Positions 1 through 55,697 of a DNA stretch of 64,000 nucleotides are shown piece by piece (within the stretch, counting starts at the first letter, position 1; each line of letters opens with the position of its first letter). The notes beneath the pieces were generated by a model that saw only the letters and a list, made by a program, of their open reading frames with translations, did not search any database and was not told where the DNA came from. This stretch comes from Dendrobates tinctorius. Taxonomy: Eukaryota. The stretch covers positions 5,890,001 through 5,954,000 of the forward strand of contig NW_027361819.1 of assembly GCF_039654945.1 (NCBI RefSeq). Reading direction: 5' to 3'. A program made the position numbers and the translations under genes.

Positions 1-20
1 TTGGTTTGATTCTTGATTGA

Positions 21-579: not shown

Positions 580-1473
580 TTGATTCTTGATTGAACTGGT
601 CTTGGAATATGAAGTAGTAATTATTGTCACTGCCCCCGACATGTAATAAGAAGTCCCACTGTTGTTTTGTCAAATTTTCCATAAGTATGAACACAGCAGA
701 GGACACCTTTGTTAAAAACTCAAACTGCCTCATACTTGTCTGTAAATCTCCATTTAGATTGGCCAATGCAAAAGGGTTTTCAAGTGGATTCATGTCAATT
801 TGGTAGGCAGGGAAAAACCAAGATATTTCCACCAAACCATGTGAAATAATTCCCGGCATATCTCCCCAGTCCATCACTCTTTGCAAGCAATTATTCTTAC
901 TCCTCTGTTGAGCTGCAGTTAAAATTTGCTTCATAATCTCGGCTATAGACGTGCGTTGACTCTTGCCAAGACTTACAAAGGAAAAGACTGGCAAAGGAAT
1001 GTTTACGACACTGTCTTCAGTCAATGCCCTAAGTTCAACCAACGATGGAGAAACGCTTTCCATGATAATACTTCTCATTGCCCACAACAAAAATGTGCCA
1101 TCTCCTTCTTCCCCAGCTGGAAGGAGCAGAGGAACAGGGACCTGGCACATGGACATCCTTCTTATGATCTCTTGCCGTAGAAAATTGTCTGAGCAATGGA
1201 AGAGACCGCAGAGAACATCTAGAGGGTGGACAGGTCCTGATATGTTACCTGAAATGTCCTGCTGGTTAATATCAAAGCTTCTAAAAGCTTCTTGGATATT
1301 CAATGCCATGAGATGTCTTAGAAGATGCATAGGGATGTCCTTGATGGAATTTTAGGAAGCATCTGACATTCGCACATCGCAAATGATACTTTGGACGTTT
1401 GAAAGCGACAGTTTCTGTTGTATAAATGTACCCAGACCTAAATCTTCTAAAATCATCCTGAACATCGCATTAT
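580..1473 (-). pseudogene. URGCP: URGCP/VLIG(GVIN1)-like very large GTPase, N-terminal part of the large exon; disrupted
   Basis: Acceptor ttttttttccag at 1474-1485. Translation DNAMFRMILEDLGLGTFIQQKLSL...*NSIKDIPMHLLRHLMALN...VHPLDVLCGLFHCSDNFLRQEI..MSMCQVPVPLLLP...FLLWAMRSI..ISHGLVEISWFFP..ANLNGD matches URGCP/GVIN motifs. In-frame TAA at 1352-1354; the insertion at 21-579 truncates it. The exon probably continues left of the window. Confidence 0.8.
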
Positions 1474-2020
1474 CTGGAAAAAAAAAAGTGAGAATTTTAT
1501 AAAGTCATTGGGCAAAATAGGATAGTTGCTGCTATCAAAAACTGCCAACACCCCCGCCAAACCAAATTTTCTTCTCTGCCAAATTGGTGTTTCCATCATG
1601 GGTAAACTCTGAATCTGTTCATAAATCAGAACTTTGACATAAGACATCAAGGTAGGGCCTTCATCATACATGGTCAGCATGGATTGCCAGACCAATGTTA
1701 GGTCTTATGAGTGATGTCACCTAGATCGTTGTAAGACAGAATCAGATATTTGGGATTTTTTTATACTGTCTCATAAAAGATCAGTACTAGAGTTAAACCC
1801 TCACAGGGATCAGCATTTGGCCTTGTCCTTCTGGATATTTTTGTTGGACAGATGTATGAATTTGATAACCATTAGGGTGTCCATTGGAAAGCTGACCAAA
1901 CCTACCAACTGGCAGGAAAAGACTAGAGCTAATACATGAGTATGGGAGAGTCCTGATAACTACAGTATAATCAGCTCTAGCTGCTGCCAGTGGTGTAGAC
2001 GATCATAGACCGTGACTCAC

Positions 2021-2291
2021 CAGCTCTCGTCTCACTCAGGAGGCGTAAAATCCGGGGAAATAAATGTGGATTTTGTTTCAAATGTTCCAAAAACTGTTGA
2101 CAAGCGTCTTCCCCTCCGTCCAGTAATATGTTCAAGAGTTCTTCTGTCTTCCGCCTGGGATCATCCATCTGTTCCACAGCATTGTGCCTGAGGGTATAAC
2201 GGAGCAGCACCTCAATCTCTTCTTCCAGACAGGCCAAATTTGATTGAAGAATCTTCCGGAACACTTTACGCAACCTCTCCGTAGAGCTCAT
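2021..2291 (-). CDS. CARD (death-fold) domain exon, spliced in phase to the URGCP/VLIG-like exon
   Basis: MSSTERLRKVFRKILQSNL...RRKTEELLNILLDGGEDACQQFLEHLKQNPHLFP shows the CARD-like LL..L...GE.AC..FL..L pattern. Acceptor AG at 2294-2295; donor G|gtgagt at 2021/2020; phase 1 matches the acceptor at 1473. Confidence 0.72.
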
Positions 2292-2389
2292 ATCTGGTAA
2301 TAATAAGAGAACAGTTTGCTGAGTAAAGGCTTTTATTGCTTCATGTATATATACTGTATGGACCTTGGGATGGAGACATCTATTTCTTT

Positions 2390-4850: not shown

Positions 4851-5123
4851 ATGAATAGGAGGTGGATGTGCAGTACCAGTTCCACTACAAGTAGAATGAG
4901 CAGCTTGGTAAGTGTTTCCAGCCAGCGGCCACTGCCATCAACACCGATAACAATTGTTTGGTGGGGGTGCCGGGTGTCAGATCCCGACCGATCAGATATT
5001 GATGACCTATCCTAAGGATAGGCCATCAATGTAAAAGTAGCGGACAACCTCTTTAAAGGATCGACCTCCATACTGTGCCCTTCTACAGCCCTCCCAGAAG
5101 CTTCTCCCCATTCCCAGTCTTAC

Positions 5124-5778
5124 TGGGGCCTTGTTCTCTGTAGGTTTCTCTTCTCCTGGGTGCAGGTCTTCCTTTGAGTCTTCTTCTGGGTGCAGGTCTT
5201 CCTTTAAGTCTTCTTCTGGGTGCAGGTCTTCCTTGGTGCCTTCTTTTGGGTGCAGGTCTTCCTTGCAGTCTTCTTCTGAGTGCAGGTCCTCCTTGGAGTC
5301 TTCTTCTGGGTGCAGGTCTTCCTTTGAGTTTTCTTCTGGGTGCAGGTCTTCCTTGCAGTCTTCTTCTGAGTGCAGGTCCTCCTTGGAGTCTTCTTCTGGG
5401 TGCAGGTCTTCCTTGGTGCCTTCTTTTGGGTGCAGGTATTCCTTGGAGTCTTTTACTGGGTCAGGTATTCCTTAGAGTCTTCTTCTGGATGCAGGTTTTC
5501 TTGAAGATTTCTTCTGGGTGCAGGTATTCCTTGGAGTCTTCTTCTGGGTGCAGGTTTTCCTTTAAGATTTCATCTGGGTGCATTTATTCCTTGGAGTCTT
5601 CTTCTGGGTGGAGGTTTTCCTTGGTGTCTTCTGGTTGCAGGTCTTCCTTGGAGTCTTCTTCTAGCTGCAGGTTTTCCTTTTATCCTTCTTCCATGTTGAG
5701 ATCTTCCGTGGAGTCGTTTTCTCTATCTCTGACGACTCGTCTTCTGCTGTTACTTGTTTTCTTCTCATTTCTTTTCTC
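5124..5778 (-). pseudogene. Degenerate acidic-repeat exon: 30-bp tandem repeat encoding (PEEDSKEDLH)n on the minus strand
   Basis: About 17 copies of the 30-bp unit. Pyrimidine-rich acceptor ttgttcctcccag at 5779-5791 and donor gtaaga at 5123. Variation between copies looks codon-like, but there are TAA stops and 1-bp deletions. Confidence 0.5.
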
Positions 5779-6183
5779 CTGGGAGGAACAATGAAGGAGC
5801 AGCTGCGGCTCAATAATCGCTGCCCTGTGAACACGGCGCAATCAGTAAGAACCCCGTCGGCTGGTTACATTAAACTCCGCTGCCCCTCGCTCTTTATTGA
5901 CACCCATCAGTGTTGGTGCGATCCCTAATTTTAGGAGTTTCATGTTGATTACAACAACCTGATCCAAGAGCACAATGATTGGCTGTAGCGCTGTCACCGC
6001 TGCTGCCAATCAACAGCAACCATAGCCCAGGTAGAGCAGGTACAGATCAGTGTGTTAGTTTACATTTTCCTGACCATCTGGCAGCAGCTGCACAGATCTG
6101 GTTTGTGAGGTCTCAATTCACTGACAGAAAGCAGACACCTCCGCCCTGCAGATCTCCTGGGTCGGAAACTTCTGGCTCTTCTC

Positions 6184-6296
6184 AAAGTGAAAGTGAAAAT
6201 TTCTCAGAGACGAATCAGTCAGCGCTGCCTGCAACGAAGGGGGAGGGGGATAATGTCCAGGAAAACGAAAAATATCTGAAAAGATCAAGTGAAACT
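6184..6296. promoter_or_regulatory. IRF-E/ISRE cluster upstream of the CARD-URGCP gene
   Basis: AAAGTGAAAGTGAAA at 6184-6198, GAAAACGAAA at 6261-6270 and AAGTGAAACT at 6287-6296. Confidence 0.6.
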
Positions 6297-8526: not shown

Positions 8527-10948
8527 ATCGTGATAATATATATGAATCTAATGAAAATGTAGAGTCCCTGTGGGTAGAGATAAGGGGAGGGGGGAAAAAT
8601 AATAAATTACTGATAGGGGTTTGTTATAAGTGTCCAAAAATAATGGAAGCAACAGAGAATATCCTCATAAAGCAAATAGATGAAGCGGCGACTCAAGGAG
8701 AAGTCATTATTATGGGGGACTTCAACAACCCTGAAATACATTGGGGAACCTGAACCTGCAGTTCCAGCAAAGGTGATAGGTGTCTGACAACGATGAGAGA
8801 CAATTACCTTTCACAACTGGTTCAGGACCCAACAAGAGGGGGCACTGCTAGACCTAATATTAACCAACAGGCGAGACCGCATATCAAATGTAAGGGTTGG
8901 GGGTCACTGGGGGAATAGTGATCACAAATTAATAAGTTTTCATGTATCCTTTAATAAGATGTGTAGTAGAGGGGTTACAAGGACACTAAACTTCAGGAAG
9001 GCAAATTTCCACCGGATGAGAGATGATCTTGGTGCAATTAACTGGGACGATGTCCTGAGACATAAAAATACACAAAGACAATGGGAGACGTTTATTATCC
9101 TCCTGAATAGGAGCTGTGCACAATATATACCGTATGGGAATAAACCTGCGAGAAATAGGAGGAAACCACTATGGCTAAATAGAGCTGTAAGGGGTGCAAT
9201 AAGGGACAAAAAGAAAGCAGAGAATTACAGCAAGTAGGTAGTGATGAGGCATTAAATAAAAACAGAAAATTAAATAAATTCTGTAAAAAGCAAATCAAGA
9301 CAGCAAAGATTGAGACAGAGACTCATTGCCAGAGAAAGTAAAAATAATCCCAAAATATTCTTTAACTACATAAATAGTAAGAAGCTAAAAAATGATAGTG
9401 TTGGTCCCCTTAAAAATAGTCTGGGTGAAATGGTGGATGTGGATGAGGAAAAAGCCAATATGCTAAATGACTTTTTTTCAACAGTATTTACACAAGAAAA
9501 TCCCATGACGGATAACATGATCAGGGATAAAAAATTCTCTGTTAGATGTCACCTGCTTAACCCAGCAGGAAGTACGGCGACGTCTAAAAATCATTAAAGG
9601 TGACAAATCCCCGGGCCCGGATGGGATGCACCCCCGAGTACTGCAGGAAGTAAGCACAGTCATAGATAGAACATTATTCTTAATCTTTAAGGATTCCATA
9701 ATAACAGGGTCTGTACCACAGGACTGGCGTATGGCAAATGTGGGGCCAATATTCAAAAAGGGGACAAAAAGTGAACTTGGAAATTATCGGCCAGTAAGTT
9801 TAACCTCAACTGTGGGTAAAATCCTGGAGGGTTTTCTAAGAGATACTATACTGGAGTATCTGGAGAAGAATAACCTTATGACCCAATATCAACATGGGTT
9901 TACAAGGGACCGTTCCTGTCAGACTAATCTGATAAGCTTTTATGAAGAGGTAAGTTCCAGACTGGACCAAGGGAATGCAGTGGACGTGGTGTACATGGAC
10001 TTTTCAAAAGCTTTTGATACGGTGCCACACAAAAGGTTGATACATAAAATGAGAACAATGGGGATAGGGGAAAATATGTGTAGGTGGGTTAAGAGCTGGC
10101 TCAGGGATAGGAAACAAAGGGTGGTTATTAATTGAGCACACTCAGACTGGGTCATGGTTAGCAGTGGGGTACCACAGGGGTCAGTTTTGGGCCCGTTTCT
10201 TTTTAACATATTTATTAATGACCTTGTAGGGGGCATAGAGAGTAGAATTTCAATATTTGCAGATGACACTAAACTCTGCAGGGTATCAATACAGAGGAGG
10301 ACAATTTTATATTACAGGAGGATTTATGTAAACTAGAAGCTTCGGCAGATAAATGGCAAATGAGCTTTAATGGGGATAAATGTAAGGTCATGCACTTGGG
10401 TAGAACGAACAAGATGTATAATTATGTGCTTAATTGTAAAACACTGGGCAAAACTGTCACTGAAAAAGACCTGGGTGTATGGGTGGACGACAAACTCACA
10501 TTTAGTGGCCAGTGTCAGGCAGCTGCTGCAAAGGCAAATAAAATAATGGGATGCATTAAAAGAGGCATAGATGCTCATGAGAACATAATGTTACCTCTAT
10601 ATAAGTCACTAGTGTGACCACACTTAGAATACTGTGTACAGTTCTGGTCTCCGGTGTATAAGAAAGACATAGCTGAACTGGAGCGGGTGCAGAGAAGAGC
10701 GACCAAGGTTATTAGGGAGCTAGGGGGTCTGCAATACCAAGACAGGTTATTACTCTTGGGGTTATTTAGTTTGGAGAATCAAAGGCTTAGGGGTGATCTT
10801 ATTACAATGTATAAATATATGCGGGGACAGTACAAAGACCTTTCTAATGATCTTTTTACTCTTAGACCTGTGACGGGGACAAGGGGGCATCCTCTATGTC
10901 TGGAGGAAAGATGGTTTAAGCATACTCACAGATGCGGATTCTTTACTG

Positions 10949-10951
<3 letters not shown>
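8527..10951 (+). mobile_element. CR1 LINE family A, 5'-truncated, degenerate ORF2 (APE C-terminus + RT)
   Basis: [46 protein letters not shown] and FADDTKL motifs, with frameshifts and stops. Confidence 0.92.
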
Positions 10952-12545
<1,594 letters not shown>

Positions 12546-14494: not shown

Positions 14495-15208
14495 CGTCCA
14501 TGTGCAGAAACACAGCAACATCTGATCGCTTGTCGTGTAACAACATGGTGGCTATTGATGGTGTGTGAGGGGCCGGTCCATGTGATGACGTATACAGCCG
14601 GTAGTAATGACGTATACAGCCGGTAGTAATATATGTAGATGTAACATCGTTACTAAGTGAAGAACGATTCTAATGACGCAGAGAGAACTGTAATCAGCGA
14701 TTGTTCTAGTGTACATATGGTGATAGGTGTCACAGCTGTATGTGAGGGGACTCACCAATCATGTGACCAGAGCAAAAGTTAAATTAAATGCCCCCTATGT
14801 GAAATTCAAAGAGGCGACTTTGGATAAAATATCGCAGAGCTGGTGTGGATGCATAAGTCCGCACACCCTGTAAATGAGAAGATCTATACAGGTGCATAGG
14901 GGCGGCAGTCGCACCCAGGTTCCAAGAGGTCCCTTCAGCTTGTTGGAGAGGACCCATGCTACCAGAGGTGCCTGATACGTAGGGGCCCTGTGGGAGATTT
15001 GCATTGGGGCCCACGAGGTTTGCGTTACACCAGTGGATCTAAGCATGACACACTGAGATGTCAGATGGAGGCGCGGGCCGAGCTGTGTACACAGGACAGA
15101 AGACATCTTTACCAGTGGCGTTGCCTTCTGGGCACTGTAGGGCTTTACGGCACGAGGGTGTGGGTAGAATTTTGCATGGTCTGATTGGAGAAACGATGTT
15201 TTGTGCTT

Positions 15209-15454
15209 TTATATTGATTTCCGCATTTTGAACTCTCTATACATCTGGCCGGCTTTAGTGTGGATCACCTTTCCCGCCATTTCGATAAGTGAGGGGGCAA
15301 CAGCGGAGACCACATTCTTCAACTTGTCAAGGACGGGTGTATACCATTGATGCTCATCCATCTTCTTCTCCTCCTCCACCTGCAAGTCCTCGATCTGCGC
15401 TTGGTACATGTTGGCTTGTTTGTGAAATCCCTGTCTCTCGTAGGAATCCCGCTC
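15209..15454 (-). CDS. GBP: GBP last coding exon (ERDSYERQGF...MYREFKMRKSI*)
   Basis: Acceptor gcacag at 15455-15460, phase 0; TAA at 15209-15211. Confidence 0.82.
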   Translation of the reverse strand, partial: ERDSYERQGFHKQANMYQAQIEDLQVEEEKKMDEHQWYTPVLDKLKNVVSAVAPSLIEMAGKVIHTKAGQMYREFKMRKSI

Positions 15455-16400
15455 CTGTGCACACACAATAAGAACGGCTGAGTATAACGCTATGGTAATG
15501 GAGCGCCCACTAAGTCTAAGTCAGGCAAAGAGGAGCACGAGTCAGTTACAATCATTATCCGGGCAGCTTAACCCTCAAGATGCTGCTGCTCACTCTGTCA
15601 CGTGCGTGCTCACATCCTCCAGCAATGTCATCCCACCAACGTCAGCCCCACTTTTCCCGGATAGTGGCATAACTTGTTGTGACCGCTGCAGCCAATCGTC
15701 TGCTTTGATGAAATAGTAAAGCCTACAGCTAAACAGCAGCCACTCATTGGCTGCAGAGATTACATGGGGCAAAAATTCACATCACTCTATGGGAAAAGTG
15801 GTGCTGTGCTCGAGGTGAGTGTACATTGTTTTTAATACAATTGGGGCCCTCAATCGATTAAGCTGGGGTTGTGCAATAGTTGCCCAGTGGGACTAAAAAA
15901 AAAAAAGAACAAACAAACAAAACACCTACGTAATAACAAAATGTTTTAAAGTATCTACAGTAAATGGTGAAACTCAGTAGTCCACACGTCCCGGATTACA
16001 TGGTGACTTTCTGTAGCGCTACTGATTGCTTTTACAGTGACAGCTGCAGATCACAAGATGAGCATATCTTCAGGATAGGGCACCAATGTCAGATAATGGT
16101 GGAGATAACATGTGGGTCCACCACTGATCGGCTGTTATCTGCTCTGGCGATGGTCAGATCTGATCAGTGCAGCTTCCTTCAATGTGTAGTGGTCGCTGAT
16201 GGGTGCTGCAGATCAGCTCCTTCTCTTGAATATACTCTTAATCTCCAGTATCCGGTAGCAGCTGCTACACAGTGAACGAAGCTCTCTGACCAATGTACAT
16301 ACATCTGGCTGCCGCTGAAGGAGTTATTATGAATTAATGACGTCATAAATGTCTCCTGCCTCATTCATACAGGACAAGGACACAGACGGCCAGCACTCAC

Positions 16401-16594
16401 CCTCTCCTTGTCTGCAATAGCTCGTTGAATTTGGGCAGCCATCAATCTATTTTCTTCCGCAAATTTTTCAAACGCGCCCATCACGTGGTTTTGTATATAC
16501 GCCTTCTCGTCTTCAAGCTTCTGATTCTTCTGGGATTCATTCATTTCATGCACTTTTTGCTCCATCTCTTCAATTTTTTTCTTTGCTTTCTCCT
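16401..16594 (-). CDS. GBP: GBP coding exon 9 (coiled-coil helix 12)
   Basis: ctgcag acceptor, gtgagt donor, 194 bp; EEKAKKKIEEMEQK...IADKER. Confidence 0.85.
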
Positions 16595-17804
16595 CTGCAG
16601 AGAGAATTGAGGATAGGACGGCTTTACCTGAAGTAGGGCGCCATATTGTCCGACTCAGCCCTACACAAGTTTCTAGACAAAGGGACTTTTACACGGTACT
16701 CTGCACAAAAGTTTTACATTTTCCTACTATATTACGTCTTCTCCAGGATTCCGGCCTAGAGATTTCCTAATGTAGGGATGTGGACTTGTCTTACCCTATT
16801 CCTACCTCTGAAGAGAACAGAGGCGCCATGTGAATATTGTCATGCAGTTTTATATGTAGAAGTAATGCGTGTCCAATGTAATGCATTATGGTGATACACA
16901 GTATGTAAAGTGTTAATGCGTAATGTGAGTACAGCATAAGATATAGAATAAGGATAATACGTATAGCGTATAAAATAGGAAATGGTTAAGTATAGAGCTA
17001 GTACAGTAGTGCTGATAAAAGGGAGGCACGTCCTGGTCAGAGGGAGTCCAGTGTCAGTGAAGAACCTAGTGAAGGCCAAGTTCACATGCGGTGGGCTGCT
17101 AGGGGCAGCATGTGTCGCTTGTTCCAGGCAGTGGATGGCATTACTGGGATCCTGAGCTGCTGCTCCTGTCACGCCCAGAGACCAAGATCTGGTATATGGG
17201 CTGCTGGACACATCGTAGAAAATGGACAGGGATGAGGATGGCTGGTCCTGGATGCATTGCCGAGGTGGATGAGAAATCCCAGAGACTGACAGAATCAGTG
17301 GACTTGGGGGTAGTCTAGGACGAGCTAGGGACAGGACTTAAGAGAAGTTGTGCTGAGAAGGAGGAAAACGTGAATAGTTGTGCCCTATTCCACATGTCAC
17401 CACCTGATGAACTTGGACTGTTTAGTAAAAGTTTGACTGTTGTAAAGAACTGGAGGCATTGGAGGCCTGAGACATACAAGTAAGTGTGATGCACCTCACA
17501 CCCTACATCACCCTGGGACTGGGACACCCCTTGTCTGTAAAGTGCCAGAGTGAAGCTGGACAGCAGCTCGGTCACGACTACCGCTCTGCGCCACTTTACA
17601 CTAGCATTGCTCCATAAGAAGGTTATAGGTAGCCGGATTAGACCCATGTACATGGGCCATTACTTCGATATACTATGTGTAGATACGAGTCTCTGATGAA
17701 GAGCAGAGAAATGTACAAGAGAAATTGTGAACGCAACATTGAGAAGCGGGAAGATCCTCTCAAGACTGTAAGAAGAACACCTACAACTATAAGCGATCGT
17801 TCAC

Positions 17805-17907
17805 CTTCAAGCTCCTTCTCTTTCTCAGTCAAGGCTTCATCGGTCTTCAGAATATTGATTTCAATGGATTTCCAAAGGGTCAGGTATTTCTGGAGCACAG
17901 TTTCAGC
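17805..17907 (-). CDS. GBP: GBP coding exon 8
   Basis: 103 bp; AETVLQKYL...ILKTDEALTEKEKELE; AG/GT boundaries. Confidence 0.88.
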
Positions 17908-18371
17908 CTATATGAATGAGAAATGTAAAAAGTATAAACTATTTGAACCATGAGAAAAGCGAATCTGAATCTTGTCCATTATGTGAAGCATAAATGGCCA
18001 TCGATGGCCATCAATAGATCAACTGGAAAGAGTCAGCGATCACCTGATGGAGGCATCATAGATATGTTGGTTACGTAAGGTCCCCATACATATTAGATGA
18101 AAGTCCGTTGAACCTGCCGATCGGGGCAGGACTGGACGACCATCTAATGTTTATAGGAGGCTCCTGATTCTCCTGAACAGATGGTGTCGGAGAACAGTAG
18201 GAATGAGCCATTGGAATTTCAGCACCTGATGCTTTTCTTTTCAGGGAAGATAAGCTGCTACCAGAAAAGTCCAACAGCGGTTTTCTTCTCTCTCCCCCCA
18301 CGCCTATGGAGGAGGCGGGAAAGTCAGCTATCTGATGAATGAATGTTCAGTTCTTATTCTCTACCACCAAC

Positions 18372-18584
18372 CTCAATGCCCTTCCTGGGTTCCATGTGAT
18401 ATTTTTCTTCTATTGCTTGTAAGTCTTCCTTGAATTTTTTATGGCCACCACGAACACTGTATGATCCTTTAGAAAAAGCTTCCTGGTTCTCCGCAGAATG
18501 CTTCTTAATCAGGACTTCACAAACTTCCCGGGACTTCTCCTCATTCATATTACAGAACTCATTCTTCTTCTGTTGGATCAGTTC
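18372..18584 (-). CDS. GBP: GBP coding exon 7
   Basis: 213 bp; ELIQQKKNEFCNMNEEKS...YSVRGGH...PRKGIE. Confidence 0.9.
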
Positions 18585-19210
18585 CTGAAGGAAAAAACCA
18601 CAACCTTCAAATTTTTGCTGGATAATTGGTTTTAAGAGTCAAGCTCAACTCAACAGCCATATATGGAGTATTTGGGACTGTTAAGGTCCAGTTGGAGATG
18701 GACTAGATTTGCTATGATTAATTAATAAATCTCATCATACTGGTGTGTTCACCGGATCTTAGCATAAAAGTGTTGCGCAAGCCATATGTTAGATATCATG
18801 ATTAAGGGAGCTTAGTCACCACAAACGCGTCGATATCACATTTTATGTACTGTTTACGCTGATGCTTTTTCCCTCTATTGAGCACGTTTTTCAGTGAACA
18901 AAGGAAAAGTTTTTTCACTACTTCATTTAGCTGGATCCTCCATTCCCATGATATAGAGCGCCTGCTGGAAGACAGGACCACTGTGAATGTGACTCTCCAA
19001 TAAAAAGACTCTGAGAAGAGAAATATGACCTTTATTTTTAGGTGTTAGGATGAGATGATTGAATCTGTTTAAAGCAAAACTAATTCTCTAATTTTACAAA
19101 ATATTTTGACCTAAATCCATTTTTTGTGTGATTTCCTCCCAGCAAAATGTTAAATCAAATTTTGTGGCCATAATTACAGCAGATTTGTTGATCACTAGTG
19201 TCGGACTCAC

Positions 19211-19491
19211 CATATATTCTTGGAGGAATTTCTGGTCTTTGTCTTTAAATGACCTTTTTAAAAAGATCGGAAGAGCTTCGTTCTCGCACTGCCGGCTCAG
19301 CTCAAGGAACTCGGTCAGGGTGTCGGTGGGGAAGACGACGCGTTCCTTCATCTTGTTCTCATAATATTGCACAGCCTCCTGGATGGCCGCCTTGTTCTCG
19401 ATGTCAGACAGGGTATGGGCCACGTCCTCCATGCAGGCAATATTGGATGTCATTATCGCCTCAGTGTACATCTCTGCCAGTTTACCAAGCT
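19211..19491 (-). CDS. GBP: GBP coding exon 6
   Basis: 281 bp; QLGKLAEMYTEAI..IACMEDVAHTLSDIENKAAIQEAVQYY..FPTDTL..FLKRSFKD. Confidence 0.92.
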
Positions 19492-19539
19492 CTGAAAAAC
19501 AAATGGAATGAATGGATGAACCGATGAGGTCTAGAAGAA

Positions 19540-20165
19540 GTCTGCTCTCAGGTGGGGGTGGTAGTATGCTCTCAGGCAGGGGGTGGTAGTGTGCTCTCAG
19601 GCAGGGGTGGTAGTCTGCTCTCAGTTAGGGATGGTAGTCGGCTCTCAGGCGGGGGTGGTAGTCGGCTCTCAAGTGGGAGGTGGCAGTCTGCTCTCATGTG
19701 GGGGGTGGTAGTCTGCTCTCAGGTGGGGGTGGTAGTCTGTTCTCAGGTGGGGGTGGTAGTCTACTCTCAGGTGGGGGGGTGTAGTCTACACTCAGGTGGG
19801 GGTGGTAGTCTGCTCTCAGGTGGGGGGGTGGTAGTCTGCTCTCAGGTGGGGGGGTGGTAGTCTGCTCTCAGGTGGGGGTGGTAGTCTGCTCTCAGGTGGG
19901 GGGTGGTAGTCTGCTCTCAGGTGGGGGGGTGTTGTCTACACTCAGGTGGGGGGTGTTGTCTACACTCAGGTGGGGCGTGTTGTCTACACTCAGGTGGGGG
20001 TGGTAGTCTGCTCTCAGGTCGGGGTAGTAGTCTGCTCTCAAGTGGTGGGGTGGTAGTCTGCTCTCAGGTGGGGGGGTGGTAGTCTGCTCTCAGGTGGGGG
20101 GGTGGTAGTCTGCTCTCAGGCGGGGGTGGTAGTCTGCTCTCAGGTGGGATGGTAGTCTGCTCTCT
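19540..20165. repeat. G-rich ~26-bp minisatellite (GGTAGTCTGCTCTCAGGTGGGGG)n in a GBP intron
   Basis: More than 20 tandem copies visible. Confidence 0.92.
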
Positions 20166-20215
20166 GATGGTTCTTCCCTTAGTAATGGACTCCCTTTTGC
20201 ACAGATATAACTCAC

Positions 20216-20464
20216 GGCTTCCTGTAACTGTGACGCTGCCGATCACTTTCTTCGCTCCTGCTTCCTGGAAGATATAGTCACAGAAATTCTTTGTCTGCTG
20301 CAAAAATTCCTTTTTCAGTTCACTCTCGGAAATGTTGTCCATGTTCTGCAGAACTTCCGTTTTCGCAGATGGCTGATCAAACACGAAGCACTTGCGCTTC
20401 CCGAAGTACATGCGGAGGCGTTTCCTGGGTCTGTTATAATCCTCGTCTCTGGGTGTCTTTTCCG
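20216..20464 (-). CDS. GBP: GBP coding exon 5
   Basis: 249 bp; YNRPRKRLRMYFGKRKCFVFDQP...FCDYIF...VTVTGS. Confidence 0.92.
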
Positions 20465-20578
20465 CTGCCGCGAAGAAGAGAAATGTGATGGCGTGACAGT
20501 CAATGGAGGACGGAGCGATCGCTGATGGCTCCCCCCGTGATCCGCTCCTTTATCTATAGGCGTCGTCTCGATACTTAC

Positions 20579-20766
20579 GGTTTCGCAGCTTCAGAGCGTT
20601 GTCCAGATATTCATCCTCCGTAATCTGTTTCCCACCAACGTTCAGCTTCAAATGAAAATCTCTCACGGCCCAAATGAAGATGGGGAAATGCAGGGAGAAT
20701 TCCGCCTCCTCGTCCTCATTGTCATGAGATTTCACCTTGATCAGTTCTGCAAGATCCCCCACAAAT
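20579..20766 (-). CDS. GBP: GBP coding exon 4 (G4 motif WAVRDF)
   Basis: 188 bp; FPIFIWAVRDFHLKL...ITEDEYLDNALKL. Confidence 0.93.
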
Positions 20767-23044
20767 CTATTCACGGTGGATAAGGAAATGCCGGATAATG
20801 GCTTATTACAAAATGTCTGAACTCCCCAAAACTGGGCTGACTAATGATCATTCCTTCATCGTTTGCCATTTATAAAAAAAAATCTCAGACCTCCTTGACA
20901 TTTGGATTTTCTTGGCCGATGATGAAGCCGGTTGTTATCATCAGTGGAAAAACCACCTGATCGGTGTTCTGAACTGTGGCAATATTCGTTGGTTGGGCAT
21001 CGGTCAAAATTCAATGAAAAGGTTGTCGATCATCCATTATGTTGGAAATTGCCCATTTTGGACAAATTTTACCCAAACTTTATTGAGATTTGACAATTTG
21101 CGCTGCGCTCCTACAAGGATGGCTAGCACTGTAAGGAAGTGAAATAATGCTAAAAGTTCAGTAATTTGGGTTTTGTTTGGTTATGTAATAGAATTTTTGC
21201 ATAATTAATTGCATGGGGATATGTCTTTTAACATAAAATGGGTGAACTGGGTCAGTAGTGCTAAATCATCATCAGTCATTTAGAATTTTACCCCCTTCCC
21301 AGCATAGAATGTAATGTCCTATTGTAAAGGAGAGAAGATGATGCCAGTACAACCCTTTGAAGATGTTATGGTTATATAATGTGTTGTTTTAAATGTAGTT
21401 TTATCTGGTTTGTGTGTTGCAACAGTGGTTTAGTTGCGGACAGGTTTAATTATTGGAACCAGCCCAGTATGGGAGGGGGTTACATTTGCACAAGGGAATT
21501 AATCTTGTTAGACAGACAGGGTTGAGTACTTGACAAGTAAATACTCTAAGTAAATACCTATGGTCTTGCTGGTCGCAGACATGTATGTGAACGGGTGTTA
21601 GTGTGCCGTAAGGGGAGACCATGCATAGGATAGCACATTTTGAAGGAAACGAAAATTAAGTGGCAGAAGGATTCCTGATACCAGACAAGGAGGCCTATAC
21701 TATGTTTGGGGATGAATGTATGGGGTGAGCTCAGGAACAGTGCTGCTATGGCTGCTGGTGGCCTGCTGATGGCTCCATGGCTGCCATGTTGGAAGTCCTG
21801 TGAAGCCCAGCCACATACTGAGCTTCATAGGAGATTGTGATTTTATAGTTACAATTATCGGTATTGTAGGAAACTGAACAAGTGACATCAAATCCGGTGG
21901 AGATAAAATAATACAGTAAAAGAAAATTAAAATTATTATTTTTTATAAAATGTATCAATATTTTAATCACGTATTAATAAACGTATTTGGAATCGCATTG
22001 TCTGAAAAAGTCCAATTTGTCAAAGTGGCAAAGTAATTCATCCGGTAAAGCCGCACAGAGGAAAAAAAAAGGCAAAACTCCAGATGTGCGCTTTTACGGT
22101 TGTCCTCTCCATGAGAATGCAACAAGAAGCCATCAAAATGTTATGCGTACCCAAAAATGGTGGCAATAAAAACGTCAGCTCGCCAGGCGGAAACCAGGCC
22201 TTCACACAAAGTCCATGGATGGAAAAGTGAAAACATTACTCGTCTCGCAAGACGACGACGACACAAATGAAAACTTTTGTTTTTGCAAGTTTCTGAATGT
22301 TTTTTCTCCACATAAATAGACTATTAGTCTTTGGTGTCTCTGTACTCGCACTGACCTGGGTAATCATATTGTCAAGTCATTTTTACCAAACTAAATCTTA
22401 CAAACAATGGCGGAATTGCAATTTCATTTTTCACCGCACTTGGAAGTTTGTTTCCTTTTTTCACGTGTTTCAGTACACTGTACGGTAAAATAAATTGGGT
22501 CATTCAAAATTACAACCCGTCCTGCGAAAAACAAAACCTTACATGGCGACGGAAAAATAAAAATGTGACGGCTCTTGCGAGCAGGGAACAACAAAATTAA
22601 AGAAGGGGTAAAAACAGAAAATTGCTAATACAAGGTTCGCAGCCCGATACCATCAGGCCAACTTTTTATACAGCCTATTAGTGGGAAGACAATCTAGATC
22701 TTTATCAGTAGTACTGCCCACTTTAAAGTTGTTGTTTTTTAAACAAGATATCCCCTATCCATAATATAAGGTGTAACTTGCAAATTGCTGGTGGTCCAAC
22801 CCCATCGTGAATGGAGCAAAGCATGCATTTGTGGCCTTTGCTCCTTCCAATGTCCATGTGACTGGTGAAAATAGCTGAGTGCCGTGCTCGGCAGCCCCGC
22901 AGACAAGCCACGATCCAAGCGCTAGCACCCAGTGAACAGCAAGTCATCCTTTATACCAAGGATATGGGGATAGCATGATTTTTGGGGGAATAACCCTTTA
23001 CGACACTGGTAAATGAAAAGTACATAAACTTTTTGTAAGGATAC
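20767..23044 (-). other. U12-type (minor spliceosome) GT-AG intron in GBP
   Basis: 5' splice site GTATCCTT (23044-23037). Branch-like TTCCTTATC at 20787-20779, about 14 nt from the AG. No polypyrimidine tract. Confidence 0.8.
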
Positions 23045-23154
23045 TTCAGCTTGTCTATGGCATCTTGGTCGATTGTACCCTTGCTGTTATACACCAGGGC
23101 ACTACTCAGGAGGACGGAGAGGCTGAAGATCCAGATGTCATTTTTCTTGTCTCC
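23045..23154 (-). CDS. GBP: GBP coding exon 3
   Basis: 110 bp; [36 protein letters not shown]. Confidence 0.93.
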
Positions 23155-23460
23155 CTGTTAAGAAAAAAAGAAATGAGTCCTGTGGTCATAGATAATCCAT
23201 GAATGTCTCGTGGATGACCAAGATCTGTCTTCCTGTGATTTGTAGAGCTTCCATACAACCAAGCAAAAGACATGATCACTCAGGAATCAAATAGCCTGCA
23301 TATCTTATATCCTTATGCTCTAAACATTGCTCTTGTTATTTTTCATCCCTAAGTTAGTAATAATTAGATGGTACTCTAATAATAATAATGATAATAATTG
23401 AGAATGATCCCACCACTCGGGATCTGAAAATCCACCGATTTTGCAGTCTCCTTGAAGGCC

Positions 23461-23650
23461 ATAGCTTCATAGTTTTGGATAAAGGTAGACTTAAGTCCTT
23501 TGAGTTCAACCTATAGCCTAACGTGTTGATCCAGAGGAAGGCAAAAACCCCATGAGGCAGACAAAAAATTCCTTACTGACACCACATACGGCAATCAGAC
23601 TAGCTCCCTTGATCAATGTCCCGTCACAGAATCTAGTGCCCATAGCCTAG
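23461..23650 (-). mobile_element. CR1 3'UTR fragment
   Basis: Reverse complement resembles the CR1-A 3'UTR at 47220-47420. Confidence 0.55.
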
Positions 23651-24234
23651 ATCTGAATATGCTTGTGGTTTCTCCTGTTGTCCAAGAACTGATCATGGAA
23701 GACTCCTATATGTACTATAGGGAAGCAGGAGGTAAGGTGCTGGACAGAAGGTATGTTTCACAGATGTGGGTGGCCTTGGTGATGTAAGCCCCAGAGACAA
23801 CTGCTTTGATAACAATAAGTTACTGAGAGGAATTTTAGTGGAACTGATTTTGGGTCTTGGATTTGGGAGTGACCAAAAGAGCTTGGGTGGGAAAGGTCAC
23901 TCTCATACATTCCAGCCCAGGCCTTGCAGGTCCTATATAAAGCAGCTGGGTTGGCTCAGGTTTGGTCTGTAGTGTTGGAGAGGAAAAGACCAATAACAGA
24001 CTGTGCCTGAGCATAAGCAGTGCATGTACTACTGGGTGGGTGAGACCATACTACTATATTGTGCCTACCCAAGAAGAAACAGATTTTGTTATTGAATTTT
24101 TTGGCTAAAGAAAAGCTGTTTACTTTATTTTAAAATTTTACGAGAGAAAATACATTTTACCGTTTGATACTAAAACCCGTGCCTGTGTGGACCCCAGTGG
24201 CTACCAAAGAGCATGGACCCCTACACTACCTTAC

Positions 24235-24362
24235 CTTTTCCACATCACCCAGACCTTCAGTGTCTAGCAGAACCAGGACGTGGTCTGGCTTCGTAGGATG
24301 AGGAACGCACCACATCCAGATGCCTTTGGTCTCAGCTTGGACATTGTAACCCAGGTTAAAAC
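24235..24362 (-). CDS. GBP: GBP coding exon 2 (switch I / G3 DTEG)
   Basis: 128 bp; [43 protein letters not shown]. Confidence 0.95.
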
Positions 24363-24520
24363 CTATGGAGATAAATTATTGATAATTAATGTTTTTCTTT
24401 TTTTCAGTAATTGCATAAATCTAAGTCTTCTTTCACATAGATTTTAGTGATTTTTTTTTGTGCAAACCAATATATGCTATGAGTTGAATTGATGATCTAC
24501 TTCTTTGGTGGGCCCCCCAC

Positions 24521-24698
24521 CTTTCTTGGCTCCAGCTAACTTGTTCATCAGGTAAGACTTCCCCGTTCGGTATAAACCGACTATTGACACCACCACCACC
24601 GGCTGGATGATCTTTGTCAGGAATTTTACGGCCTCGGGATTCACCGTCAGCTTTCCTTCCTTGGTGTTCTCAATCAGACACACCGGGTTGTCCATCAT
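24521..24698 (-). CDS. GBP: GBP first coding exon (P-loop GLYRTGKS); the spliced CDS is 1890 nt, 629 aa
   Basis: [11 protein letters not shown]...[25 protein letters not shown]. Acceptor ctgcag at 24701-24706. All 10 exons join in frame with no stops. Confidence 0.95.
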
Positions 24699-25714
24699 AA
24701 CTGCAGTAATAAAGCAAGTGTTAATAGGAATCAAAGTGTTAAACACATCGATAATGAATTATATTATTGCACTCGGTCAATTGGGTCATGTGTCATGAGG
24801 TCAATTGGGTCATGTGGCCATTTACCACATGACTATGGGGTAAGCGTTGGGCTACGCCAGAATAATATGGCAGGAACATAAGGTGCGTTTTGGCGTTAAG
24901 GGGCAGAGTGCGGATTATCTGATGTGGCTTGTAGTGCGTTGCACCGTGTATTCGGTCACAATTTTCCGTGAACCCAAGGAATGATGCTGACATTGCCAAA
25001 TGTGGTCTGAAGAGCAGATGCTGAGTTGACCAAGAAATGATTTGCTGTTGTGAGTAATGGGCTGCAGTGCGGTGGCATGGTGCATTGTCAAACAGGGAAA
25101 GGCTTGGTTCTGGGAAGTCTGTTTGGGCGGTGAAGGACATAAGCTTAGTTAGATACGTATCTGGAGGAAGGTACAACTTAGTGGAATAGAGAGAGTGTGA
25201 AACATCAGTCTGTGAGAAGCTGGTGTAGGGTGTGATTGACTGTCCTGAGGCTTGTGGTGTGGCCAGTGAGGTGTATTTTACTGAACAGGATTGTGTTAGG
25301 TGGGGTCCGGAGCTCATAGAGATAGGGCCAGAACGTTAGTGACACCCATCCTGTGTATGCACTGCAAGTTGTGCTACTGAGCTGAGTTTAGTGGTGGCAG
25401 GTGCTGTGGAGCACAGGTTCATGGAGAACCTGGCCTGTGTGGGGTCAACAGTGACCTTTTGTAGTGGTGGGATTCTACAGAAGTGATGCCCCTGAATTCC
25501 TGAGGACCTGTAACACCTGATGAAGAAGAGAAGAAGACTGTCATTGCAAAAACATCTGGATAGGAACTGAAAGATTAAAGAAGCCAATTTCTGTCCGATT
25601 CCCACAGAGCGCAGAACCCAGAGTCGTCTCGTTACTACAAGACGTCATCATAGAAGTGGTCACAAAGACTGTTACATTCTGAGCCCGGAATAGACTTTGC
25701 CTCTCACTAAAGAT

Positions 25715-26102
25715 AATGCCAGCACCGAGATTCAGCGCCGAGTCTCAGCAGTGAGCCTCAGCACCGAGTTTCAACGCTGAGCTTCAATGCCGAGCCTCAG
25801 TGGTGAGCCTCAAGATCGAGCTTCAGCACCGAGCTTCAACCCCGAGCCTCAGCATCGAGCCTCAAGATCGAGCCTCAGCACCGAGCTTCAACCCCAAGCC
25901 TCAGTATCGAGCCTCAGCACCGAGCCTCAGCATCGAGCTTCAACCCCAAGCCTCAGTATCGAGCCTCAGCATCGAGCCTCAGCACTGAACTTCAACCCCA
26001 AGCCTCAGTATCGAGCCTCAGCATCGAGCCTCAGCAATGAGCCTCAGTACCAAGCTTCAACACCGAGCCTCAACACCAAACCTCAGCACTGAGCCTCAGC
26101 AC
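25715..26102. repeat. Short-period tandem repeat (GAGCCTCAGCAYC-like)
   Basis: Repeated gagcctcagcaccga and gagcttcaacccc units. Confidence 0.85.
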
Positions 26103-26329
26103 CTCATATGTGACTGTGAATCGCTCAATCATTGGGTTACCAGCTCAAAACAAAGATGGTATTGTGTCGGTAAGAACGTTATGGACGCGACGTTCCAGGG
26201 AAAAGGACTGTAAACAACAGAAAAGGAGATAAAATCTTATTTATGTGATATTCAGCATTTGCTACAGGAAAGGCGCAGTCAGCATGTGAAGAGTTAACGA
26301 GCGCTGTTCTCCATACTCAGAGCAAAAGA

Positions 26330-27760
26330 GAAAGTGAAAGGAGAATGATCAAAGTTCAGGTCAGAGAAGGACTACAACACTCAGCAGAGCCAATGGCTGC
26401 TTCTTGGGTCCTATGTCTATATATATAGTCTCTTGCCCTCGGTGCTGCACCCATCACTTGCCGCTGTAGTCTCCTGTCCTCACGTTACCGACCGTCAGAC
26501 AGTCAGTACAGAACGCGATCCAGCGCCGCTCTGAGCAGCTGTCACCCGGTATATGCACAGGTGCAGCAGAGCTGAGTTTGCTGTCTGGTGCTCCCCATTG
26601 TGACAGCATTATATGAGTAAAATCTGTAATGTCAAACTCAACTCTGCTACATCGCACCATCAGAGCAGACAAGGTTCTCCCATAAGAGCGAAAACTGACA
26701 GGAGAAGCACCCCAAATAACGAGAGCGATTACCGGAGGATCCCGACATGGCGACGTCTGGAGCGAAGAGCGAACACTGGGAGATCCTGATCCTCGGCCGA
26801 TCCAGCAACGAAATATGTGCAGAACGGAGGAGACCTGAAAGTGAAAGGAGGGTGAGGAGGAGGTCACATCCTGATTACAAAATGGAAACCGTAGGCAAGT
26901 CTGTACCACTAACCTCAGCTGCTGCAGAACATCACAGTGTAGCTCAGCTGCTGCAGAACCTCATAGTACACCTCAGCTGCTGCAGAACCTAATACACACC
27001 TCAGCTACTGCAGAACATCACAGTGTAGCTCAGCAGCTGCAGAACATCACCATATATCTCAGCTGCTGCAGAACATCATAATACACTTCAACTGCTGCAG
27101 AACCTCATAGTACACCTCAGCTGCTGCAGAACATCATAATACACACCTCAGCTGCTGCAGAACATCACCATATATCTCAGCTGCTGCAGAACATCATAAT
27201 ACACACCTCAGCTGCTGCAGAACATCACCATATATCTCAGCTTCTGCAGAACGGAGGAGACCTGAAAGTGAAAGGAGGGTGAGGAGGAGGTCACATCCTG
27301 ATTACAAAATGGAAACCGTAGGCAAGTCTGTAGCACTAACCTCAGCTGCTGCAGAACATCACAGTGTAGCTCAGCTGCTGCAGAACCTCATAGTACACCT
27401 CAGCTGCTGCAGAACCTAATACACACCTCAGCTACTGCAGAACATCACAGTGTAGCTCAGCAGCTGCAGAACATCACCATATATCTCAGCTGCTGCAGAA
27501 CATCATAATACACTTCAACTGCTGCAGAACCTCATAGTACACCTCAGCTGCTGCAGAACATCATAATACACACCTCAGCTGCTGCAGAACATCACCATAT
27601 ATCTCAGCTGCTGCAGAACATCATAATACACACCTCAGCTGCTGCAGAACATCACCATATATCTCAGCTGCTGCAGAACATCATAATACACACCTCAGCT
27701 GCTGCAGAACATCACCATATATCTCAGCTTCTGCAGAACGGAGGAGACCTGAAAGTGAAA
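26330..27760. promoter_or_regulatory. Four IRF-E/ISRE motifs (GAAAGTGAAA) upstream of GBP
   Basis: At 26330-26339, 26837-26846, 27264-27273 and 27751-27760. TTCCAGGGAA STAT-like site at ~26193. Confidence 0.55.
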
Positions 27761-28080
27761 GGAGGGTGAGGAGGAGGTCACATCCTGATTACAAAATGGA
27801 AACCGTAGGCAAGTCTGTAGCACTAACCTCAGCTGCTGCAGAACATCACAGTGTAGCTCAGCAGCTGCAGAACATCATAATACACTTCAACTGCTGCAGA
27901 ACCTCATAGTACACCTCAGCTGCTGCAGAACATCACCATATATCTCAGCTGCTGCAGAACATCACAGTATAGCTCAGCTGCTGCAGAACATCACCATATA
28001 TCTCAACTGCTGCAGAACCTCATAGTACACCTCTGCTACTGCAGAACTTCATCATACACCTCAGCTGCTGCGGAACCTCA
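26818..28080. repeat. Higher-order tandem repeat: three units (spacing 427 and 487 bp), each a ~95-bp head plus a ~29-bp CTCAGCTGCTGCAGAAC minisatellite
   Basis: gcagaacggaggagacctgaaagtgaaagg recurs at ~26819, ~27246 and ~27733. Confidence 0.9.
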
Positions 28081-36648: not shown

Positions 36649-38455
36649 AGAATCATAGAATCATAGAATCATAGAATCGTAGAGTTGGAAGGGACCTCCT
36701 GGGCCATCTGGTCCAACCCCCTGCTCAAAGCAGGATTCGCTAAATCATCCCAGTCAGATGTCTGTCCAGCCTCTGTTTGAAGACTTCCATTGAAGGAGAA
36801 CTCACCACTTCTCGTGGCAGCCTGTTCCACTCATTGATCACTCTAACTGTCAAAAAGTTTTTTCTAATATCTAATCTGTGTCTCCTCCCATTCAGTTTCA
36901 TCCCATTGCTTCTAGTCTTTCCTTGTGCAAATGAGAATAAAGTTGATCCTTCTACAATGTGACAGCCCTTTAGATATTTGTAGACAGCTATTAAGTCTCC
37001 TCTCAGTCTTCTCTTTTGCAAACTAAACATTCCCAAATCCTGCAACCTTTCCTCATAAGACAGGGTTTGCAGACCGGTCACCATTCTGGTCGCTCTTTTC
37101 TGAACTTGCTCCAGTTTGTTGATGTCTTTTTTAAAATGTGGTGCCCAAAACTGGACACAATATTCCAGATGAGGTCTGACCAAAGAGGAGTAGAGGGAAA
37201 TAATGACTTCACGTGATCTAGACTGTATGCTTCTGTTAATACATCCTAGAATTGCATTTGCCTTTTTTGCTGCTGCATCACACTGTTGACTCATATTCAG
37301 TCTGTGATCTATTAGTATACCCAAGTCTTTTTCACATGTGCTGTCACTTAGCCCTATTCCTCCCATTCTATATATGCTTTTTCCATTTTTATTGCCCAGA
37401 TGTAGTAATTTGCATTTCTCCCTGTTAAAAACCATTCTGTTAGTTGCTGCCCACTGCTCCAGTTTATTTAAATCTTTTTGAATCCTCTCTCTCTCTTCTC
37501 TAGTATTAGCTATCCCTCCTAGCTTTGTGTCATCAGCAAATTTAATCAGTTTACCCTCAATTCCTTCATCTAAATCGTTGATAAAGATGTTGAACAATAC
37601 AGGGCCCAGGACAGAGCCCTGTGGTACCCCACTTGAGACATCTTTCCAACTGGATGTGCAGCCATTTACGACCACTCTTTGGGTCCGATCACTAAGCCAG
37701 TTATGAATCCACCTAACAGTTGCCTTGTCCATTCCATACTTAATCATTTTTTCAATAAGGATTGTATGAGAGACTTTGTCAAATGCTTTGCTGAAGTCAA
37801 GATATACTATATCTACAGCATTTCCTTGATCCACCCAATCAGTGATACCGTCATAGAAGGAAATTAAGTTAGTCTGACATGACTTATTAGTTACAAACCC
37901 ATGCTGACTCTGTTTAATCACTTCATTCTTATCCAGGTATTGACATACATGTTGTTTAATAATTTGTTCAAAGATCTTTCCTGGTATAGAAGTCAGACTC
38001 ACCGGCCTATAGTTACCTGGGTCCACCTTCTTCCCCTTTTTGAAGATAGGAACAACATTTGCTCTTCTCCAGTCTTCTGGCACTTCTCCTGTTCTCCAAG
38101 AATTTTCAAAGATTATAGAGAGGGGTTCAAAAATTTCTTCTGCTATCTCCTTCAGTACTCTGGGGTGTAATTCATCTGGACCTGGAGACTTGAATTCATT
38201 TAGGCTAGCTAAGTGTTTCCTCACTATCTTTCTGTTTATAGATATCCTGGATTCTTCTATTCCCTTAATAGGACAGTGAATAACAGTTGATGTTACATTT
38301 CCTTTCTGAGAGAAAACAGATGCAAAATAGGAATTTAAAAGTTCAGCCTTCTCAACATCCTGTCTTACCATTTCATCATTTTCATCCTGTAAAAATCCTA
38401 TAGCATCTTTGACTTTTCTTTTACTTTTGACATATCCCCAAAGTATCACATATCC
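36649..38455 (-). mobile_element. CR1 family B, 5'-truncated but with an uninterrupted RT ORF (young copy), inserted antisense in CR1-A ORF1
   Basis: 587-aa ORF with [27 protein letters not shown] and FADD. Tail (AGAATCAT)n on plus at 36649-36684. Possible CCTT TSD. Confidence 0.95.
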
Positions 38456-41400: not shown

Positions 41401-41748
41401 GCAATATTTGCAGATGACACTAATCTCTGCAGGGTAATCAATACAGAGGAGGACAATTTTATATCACAGGAGGATTTATGTAAACTAGAAGCTTGGGCTG
41501 ATAAATGGCAAATGAGCTTTAATGGGGATAAATGTAAGGTCATGCACTTGGGTAGAATGAACAAGATGTATAATTATGTGCTTAATTGTAAAACACTGGG
41601 CAAAACTGTCACTGAAAAAGACCTGGGTGTATGGGTGGAGGACAAACTCACATTTAGTGGCCAGTGTAAGGCAGCTGCTGCAAAGGCAAATAAAATAATG
41701 GGATGCATTAAAAGAGGCATAGATTCTCATGAGGAGAACATAATTTTT

Positions 41749-55404: not shown

Positions 55405-55697
55405 TGCTGTGGTTCTATACTGTGGCTATATCCCATGGCTCTGTCCTGTGGCTCCATTTTGTGGCTCCACACTGTGGCTCCACGCAGTGGCTCTATCCCG
55501 TGCCTCTGTCCTGTGGCTCCATTTTGTGGCTCTATGCTGTGGCTCCACACTGTAGCTATATGCTGTGGCTCTATACTGTGGCTCCACACTGTGACTCTAT
55601 ACTGTGGCTCCACACTGTGACTCTACTGTGGCTCCACACTGTGACTCTATACTGTGGCTCCACACTCTGGCTCTATACTGTGGCTCCATACTGTGGC
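55405..55697. repeat. ~15-bp minisatellite (CTGTGGCTCYAYA) inside a MITE-like element
   Basis: Tandem ctgtggctc units. Confidence 0.88.

Follow-up and report, generated by a model that had tools for sequence, protein, structure and literature searches.

Genes of the GVIN1/VLIG-1 and URGCP family share URGCP, URGCP_GTPase, and GVIN1 domains and a giant terminal coding exon. One of them, human GVINP1, is an interferon-type giant GTPase gene that was disabled by stop codons in one lineage and that its relatives keep. CARD6 combines a CARD with a URGCP-type region that lacks a working GTPase, and in mammals it is reportedly interferon-inducible and structurally related to interferon-inducible GTPases. 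The primate CARD-only proteins (CARD16/ICEBERG, CARD17/INCA, and CARD18) are short frames produced by premature stops. They arose by duplication of caspase-1, whose parent gene survives, and their expression and binding have been shown. A locus that resembles all of these systems is present in a stretch of 64,000 nucleotides (nt) from the poison frog Dendrobates tinctorius (contig NW_027361819.1, positions 5,890,001 to 5,954,000; the whole stretch is called the window hereafter), where a CARD exon is joined to a giant URGCP/GTPase exon that is interrupted by a premature stop. With a probability of roughly 0.7, this locus is a young unitary pseudogene or null allele, and its CARD-only frame of 130 amino acids (aa) is an incidental by-product.

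The locus also differs from each of its closest counterparts. It belongs to the same family as GVINP1 and would likewise be a giant GTPase gene lost to stop codons in one lineage, but the subfamily is another one and the event is much younger, with only three lesions. CARD6 is ancient and conserved and has retained its URGCP region, whereas the D. tinctorius frame stops 40 codons past the CARD and is young and lineage-specific. A Callorhinchus milii protein that NCBI names CARD6 (XP_042201481.1, 507 aa) carries Pfam CARD and URGCP domains and is 37% identical to the frog CARD; it connects CARD6 with the URGCP/GVIN family at the cartilaginous-fish level. Unlike the primate CARD-only proteins, the D. 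tinctorius frame has a GTPase gene as its parent and no duplicate, and the peptide is known from sequence alone.

Structure of the locus and its three lesions

All coordinates are window positions unless they carry an L prefix, and the gene lies on the minus strand. The locus as retrieved from GCA_039654945.1 (L001) is 100% identical to the window, and a window position equals 11331 minus the L001 position. The parts of the gene that lie in the window are as follows.

2021-2291, minus strand: CARD coding exon, with its ATG at 2291; 271 nt, 90 codons plus 1 nt, phase 1
1474-2020, minus strand: intron between the CARD exon and the giant exon, from splice-site reading and orthologue exon mapping; 547 nt
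580-1473, minus strand: giant URGCP/GTPase exon, first part, matching Pfam URGCP and ending with the first target-site duplication copy
1352-1354, minus strand: lesion 1, in-frame TAA at codon 131, which is Cys in 6/6 orthologues
1328-1330, minus strand: first ATG after the TAA, start codon of the RefSeq model XP_073403328.1
580-594, minus strand: target-site duplication copy 1, TCAATCAAGAATCAA, an exact 15-nt direct repeat
21-579, no strand assigned: lesion 2, a 559-nt insertion inside the giant exon at codon ~386, bringing an in-frame TGA at 565-563
6-20, minus strand: target-site duplication copy 2, TCAATCAAGAATCAA, at which the giant exon resumes

The acceptor AG of the CARD exon lies at 2293-2294, where the polypyrimidine/AG acceptor reads TTATTACCAG/AT ATG, and the donor reads CTG/GTGAGT (2021/2020), with its GT at 2020-2019. 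The intron that follows, which measures 2.5 kb in R. variabilis and 12 kb in P. terribilis, ends at 1474 with the giant-exon acceptor T10CCAG/A, and the giant exon begins at 1473. The two exons join in phase. Ninety CARD codons, a split codon, and 39 further codons precede the TAA at 1354-1352, giving a CARD-only frame of 130 aa that consists of 90 CARD residues and 40 linker residues. The CARD exon and both splice sites are kept in P. terribilis, R. variabilis, and Anomaloglossus. A SINE-like (short interspersed element) conserved core (…GGTTTCCTCCCACGCACCAAAGAC…) was noticed, by eye only, at 2430-2530 on the minus strand, in the intron that directly precedes the CARD exon.

Past the TAA, the frame is open for 262 codons, to the TGA at 565-563, and these codons (window 1351-566) match Pfam URGCP at 2e-63 over profile positions 1-214 of 299. 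For the URGCP part, protein identity is 89% with R. variabilis and 82% with P. terribilis. Truncation of the exon at 563 is ruled out, as the exon resumes past the insertion at window 20-1 and then runs for ~1000 further codons beyond the window start (L001:11311-14315). URGCP_GTPase and GVIN1 domains are recorded on this continuation of the same frame, and the GTPase P-loop, GVQGTGKST, is intact. The GTPase reading frame as a whole is interrupted by the TAA at codon 131, by the insertion with its TGA, and by a second TAA.

The initial annotation described a CARD fused to a URGCP/GVIN-type GTPase whose coding sequence lies mostly in one giant terminal exon. The fusion is borne out by the URGCP, URGCP_GTPase, and GVIN1 domains and the intact P-loop, and the exon layout by the presence of one small CARD exon and one giant exon, as in the orthologues. 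Its statements on the sequence (CARD exon at 2021-2291 joined in phase to the exon starting at 1473, TAA at 1352-1354, 130 aa) are all correct. The span that it assigned to the gene, 580-2293, does contain these features, but 580 is the edge of the insertion rather than the end of the gene, and homology stops there because the 559-nt insertion begins at that point.

The three lesions differ in kind. Codon 131 is TGC in R. variabilis and P. terribilis, the two species in which the DNA was compared, and the TAA is two base changes away from it. The insertion is absent from all orthologues, and its excision together with one repeat copy restores a continuous frame of 1384 codons that has codon 131 as its sole internal stop and contains no frameshift. 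No second copy of the insertion was found in the window or in the four fetched loci, and it has no Rfam or tRNA match. By eye, neither terminal inverted repeats nor poly(A) was seen in it, and it is partly AT-rich. The third lesion lies beyond the window start and is a GAA to TAA change 12 codons before the ancestral stop. It removes the tail EELYMECPYLIH, the last 12 residues, which are conserved in Ranitomeya, Phyllobates, and Leptodactylus. The D. tinctorius copy also carries an in-frame deletion of 8 codons.

Lesions read from a single assembly, as these were, could reflect an assembly or sequencing artefact in an animal whose gene is intact. Such an error is extremely unlikely, as it would have to account for three independent lesions of different kinds, for a perfect 15-nt target duplication at the insertion, and for a TAA that is two base changes from TGC. 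Furthermore, every word sampled from 1300-2300 (100%) occurs in the Logan contigs of four runs that probably derive from the source sample. Because of these words and the two base differences, an assembly slip at 1354-1352 is unlikely, and the in-frame TAA reported initially is taken as real.

Identity of the CARD

The call of a CARD, also made initially from the letters of the sequence, withstood both a profile search and structure prediction. Pfam CARD (PF00619) matches the exon at 25.9 bits against a cut-off of 23.9, and the CARDs of the orthologues score slightly under this cut-off (20.7-23.8 bits). An AlphaFold (AF2) model built on an alignment of 22 frog and shark sequences has six helices, a predicted local distance difference test (pLDDT) value of 81.8, and a predicted template modelling (pTM) score of 0.68. 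It supersedes a poor single-sequence AF2 model (pLDDT 59).

The best PDB matches of this model in Foldseek are CARDs, namely those of ARC, BinCARD, RIP2, ASC, caspase-1, ICEBERG, NOD1, NLRC4, CARD8, and Apaf-1, but they are weak (E >= 0.14), and no match in PDB reached E <= 0.001. VIA-align gave Z scores including 9.8, 9.5, and 8.4 over 74-85 residues, with BinCARD at 9.8 (85 residues, root-mean-square deviation 2.3), the caspase-1 CARD at 9.5, and ICEBERG at 8.3 (25% identity), values that for a helical bundle are not decisive alone when they fall below ~13. Among its best 32 rows, 30 are CARDs and the other 2 are designed proteins, one of which was built on the Apaf-1 CARD. A phmmer search against PDB sequences gave nothing significant. 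The nearly invariant columns of the CARD alignment are all unchanged in D. tinctorius, and the domain aligns with the CARDs of larger GVIN/URGCP members through the motif GE-AC--FL-HL----FP. Because the structural matches and the Pfam match point the same way when taken together, the death-fold assignment is accepted, and the CARD exon is predicted to encode a six-helix CARD.

Orthologues and gene neighborhood

An exhaustive CARD search returned five hits, only one of them strong, which was a 1396-aa Leptodactylus protein with a CARD-like N-terminus followed by URGCP and URGCP_GTPase domains; the Callorhinchus protein with the name CARD6 was another of the hits. A word search from this protein yielded one 'up-regulator of cell proliferation-like' protein of ~1300-1404 aa per hyloid species. 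The hyloid orthologues (Phyllobates, Ranitomeya, Anomaloglossus, Rhinoderma, Eleutherodactylus coqui, Leptodactylus fuscus, Engystomops, and Bufo) belong to the same subfamily as the D. tinctorius gene, for which only one protein is on record in this species (1256 aa). Ranked lower in the same search were the larger GVIN/URGCP-like proteins, which came from frogs, turtles, and alligator and in many cases have a Pfam CARD. The subfamily differs from this larger group in length (~1400 aa versus 1650-1900 aa), in sequence (identity of only 30-45%), and in having a CARD at the edge of the Pfam cut-off (20.7-25.9 bits). The fusion of a CARD to a GVIN/URGCP protein is an architecture that is already annotated and widespread, and it is not new; literature searches for CARD-URGCP/GVIN fusions found nothing.

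The orthologues are open from ATG to stop, whereas the D. tinctorius copy has 2 nonsense codons, the 559-nt insertion, and the 8-codon deletion. Both coding exons are present and fully open in P. terribilis (1404 aa) and R. variabilis, and in Anomaloglossus baeobatrachus the giant exon translates without interruption and has an open CARD exon upstream. That CARD exon (L004:7328-7597) is unannotated. The R. variabilis model starts at Met42, yet the whole CARD exon (L003:9878-10148) is open from the same ATG. The CARD is under-reported in public models of the subfamily.

Gene order supports the same relationship. The CARD-URGCP gene of R. variabilis lies between GBP and perforin genes. Perforin is also found downstream in Anomaloglossus and in D. 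tinctorius, on the other strand in the latter. Upstream of the D. tinctorius gene and on the same (minus) strand is a multi-exon GBP gene (window ~15200-24758), with Pfam GBP and GBP_C matches on three exon-sized frames. The D. tinctorius locus thus has the same exons and the same GBP and perforin neighbors as its dendrobatid orthologues, with protein identities of 89% for the CARD and 82-89% for the URGCP part. These comparisons indicate that it is the single-copy orthologue and not a decayed duplicate. Disabling lesions in a gene present once, combined with intact orthologues among matching neighbors, form the pattern that marks a unitary pseudogene.

Age of the break and selection

Sequence changes on the D. 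tinctorius and R. variabilis branches were polarised with P. terribilis. On the D. tinctorius branch, the region past the stop has accumulated 71 nonsynonymous and 49 synonymous changes, corresponding to a nonsynonymous-to-synonymous rate ratio (omega) of 0.38 (95% confidence interval 0.26-0.55), which is significantly under neutrality (p = 6e-7). The intact R. variabilis branch has the same omega, at 0.44. For the open reading frame (ORF), the expected yield is ~160 stop-creating changes for each unit of neutral divergence. The single extra stop and the lack of frameshifts are consistent with ~0.5-2% of neutral divergence, compared with a branch dS of ~0.067. Because the rest of the frame is open and omega on the D. 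tinctorius branch matches that of the intact orthologue, the break is judged to be young. Constraint acted on the gene for most of the D. tinctorius branch, and the break is recent.

A comparison of the CARD exon with the post-stop region had been suggested initially as a way to recognize a CARD kept by selection. Codons 1-130 carry 11 nonsynonymous and 8 synonymous changes, and their omega of 0.37 is nominally under neutrality (p = 0.04). The post-stop value is equal, and the test does not discriminate. The break is too young to have left a signal in this contrast, and both regions carry the same constraint from before it. The omega of codons 1-130 reflects that earlier time and says nothing about specific retention of the CARD.

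The RefSeq model of the locus

RefSeq XP_073403328.1 (1256 aa) is the public model of this locus, with 254/255 residues matching the post-stop piece. Taken at face value, it describes a URGCP-like GTPase without a CARD, with the ATG at 1330 as its start and the insertion removed as an intron. The genome yields the model exactly once a single 544-nt gap is allowed, the GTPase motifs are undamaged, and omega shows no relaxation, all of which would suit a working protein. Such a protein is nevertheless very improbable. The sole single gap that reproduces the model (window 566-23; L001:10765-11308) has the ends GT..TA or AG..AT, which correspond to no known splice type. It is 30 nt short of the insertion plus one repeat copy and leaves ten extra residues, NQESIRKNHI, at the gap point that are absent from 6/6 compared orthologues. 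A gap of this length has no simple explanation either in real splicing or in reads from an allele that lacks the insertion. Moreover, the model is without the CARD and the first 138 orthologue residues, stops at the premature TAA so that the conserved tail is missing, and demands that translation start after an upstream ORF of 130 codons. XP_073403328.1 hides the break by starting past the TAA and by bridging the insertion with a non-consensus intron.

Candidate promoter and possible fate of a transcript

A motif scan upstream of the CARD exon found matches to the interferon-stimulated response element (ISRE) and to interferon regulatory factor (IRF) sites.

6183-6198, no strand assigned: tandem ISRE/IRF motif, AAAGTGAAAGTGAAA, 3.9 kb upstream of the CARD exon
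6261-6270, no strand assigned: second ISRE/IRF motif, GAAAACGAAA

Approximately 200 nt around the ISRE are ~96% identical to R. variabilis (L003:4470-4680), compared with 88-90% for neighboring non-coding DNA. This block is a candidate interferon-responsive promoter or enhancer that may drive the CARD gene, and because a conserved tandem ISRE lies 3.9 kb upstream, interferon inducibility of the gene is plausible. A minisatellite array with a 30-nt period (5089-5743) is located between the candidate promoter and the CARD exon.

Among the sequencing runs indexed as holding the stretch, none is on record as RNA. One D. tinctorius run holds only ~563-1300, and two small runs hold 14-18% of 1300-2300; these partial matches may come from RNA, from capture, or from chance. 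If a transcript is made, its escape from nonsense-mediated mRNA decay (NMD) by the exon-junction rule is plausible because the exon that holds the TAA is the last coding one in every orthologue. Long 3' untranslated regions (UTRs) can trigger NMD. The TAA would leave a 3' UTR of > 4 kb, which may itself have this effect. Were the RefSeq intron genuine, the TAA would sit ~790 nt upstream of the junction and the transcript would become an NMD target.

By-product of decay or CARD-only regulator

The ancestral gene was a conserved, single-copy hyloid gene of ~1400 aa, composed of a CARD exon and a giant exon that encodes URGCP, a URGCP-type GTPase, and a GVIN1 tail, and located between GBP and perforin. 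In the D. tinctorius lineage, or at least in the assembled haplotype, this gene would have been inactivated recently by three independent lesions: the TGC to TAA change at codon 131, the 559-nt insertion at codon ~386, and the GAA to TAA change that removes the last 12 residues. The CARD exon with its splice sites and the candidate promoter remain intact. Transcription of the locus, if it still occurs, would by default lead to the 130-aa CARD-plus-linker peptide, which on this account probably has no selected role. The lesions, the orthology with intact genes, and the recency of the break carry this account.

Several points weigh against reading the locus as a pseudogene or null allele. RefSeq annotates it as protein-coding (XP_073403328.1), and a gene that retains some use could also have a long open frame and an unrelaxed omega. 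The assembly comes from one individual, and the lesions could belong to a segregating haplotype. A functional CARD-only gene would likewise be expected to keep its CARD exon and splice sites intact and its ISRE conserved.

The most serious of the alternatives is a functional CARD-only regulator, in which the truncated transcript is interferon-induced and stable and the 130-aa decoy is kept by selection. By analogy with the action of ICEBERG/CARD16 on caspase-1, such a decoy would titrate the CARD partner of the lost GTPase or other CARD assemblies. The state of the 5' part of the gene agrees with this idea: the ATG, the CARD exon, and both splice sites are intact, the nearly invariant CARD columns are unchanged, the tandem ISRE is conserved upstream, and the TAA falls in the last coding exon. 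The predicted fold is a confident CARD that has the caspase-1 CARD (Z 9.5) and ICEBERG (Z 8.3, 25%) among its best matches. The low omega of codons 1-130 (0.37, p = 0.04) could be counted in its favor as well, were it not equal to the post-stop value of 0.38.

Other evidence makes a selected regulator unlikely. No RNA is on record among the indexed runs that hold the stretch, and the UTR of > 4 kb past the TAA may destabilise the mRNA. Word searches with the CARD exon (for candidates of 50-157 aa) and with the post-stop piece (144-458 aa) gave nothing, a result that is silent on longer relatives, and a word search likewise found no parent or paralogue of the subfamily left in D. tinctorius. 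The two lesions beyond the TAA at codon 131 are those that neutral decay predicts, and they fit whole-gene decay rather than a tailored CARD-only gene. Thus, of the interferon-inducible CARD decoy proposed in the initial annotation, the intact CARD exon stands, whereas the further lesions and the lack of an intact paralogue on record for it to regulate do not favor the remainder. Rather improbable as well is the specific proposal that a CARD-only regulator was born here without gene duplication, in which one nonsense change in the last exon of the interferon-driven gene would have created an inducible, expressed 130-aa CARD protein that interferes with CARD signaling while the GTPase exon started to decay.

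Other elements in the window

The window is rich in repeats. The two CR1-like reverse-transcriptase copies lie in opposite orientation and are 98% identical over 631 nt.

36740-38503, minus strand: CR1-like reverse-transcriptase copy
9626-11633, plus strand: CR1-like reverse-transcriptase copy
41727-43937, minus strand: Gypsy-like pol ORF, 736 aa
12819-13913, minus strand: Tc1/mariner-like transposase remnant
5089-5743: minisatellite array, period 30 nt
25668-26135: minisatellite array, period 13 nt
26818-28078: minisatellite array, period 29 nt
55389-55726: minisatellite array, period 13 nt
56171-57360: minisatellite array, period 27 nt

Implications

One immediate consequence concerns the public record, which is corrected by this analysis: XP_073403328.1 presents an intact 1256-aa protein for a gene that carries three lesions, and it omits the CARD exon. 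If the pseudogene or null-allele interpretation is right, the locus would represent a poison-frog case in which a conserved CARD-GTPase gene of innate immunity was lost very recently and in a lineage-specific manner. D. tinctorius would then offer a natural knockout that could be used to ask what role this unstudied CARD-GTPase subfamily plays. If the CARD-only frame is expressed, the same locus would provide one of the rare cases in which the origin of a CARD-only protein is dated.

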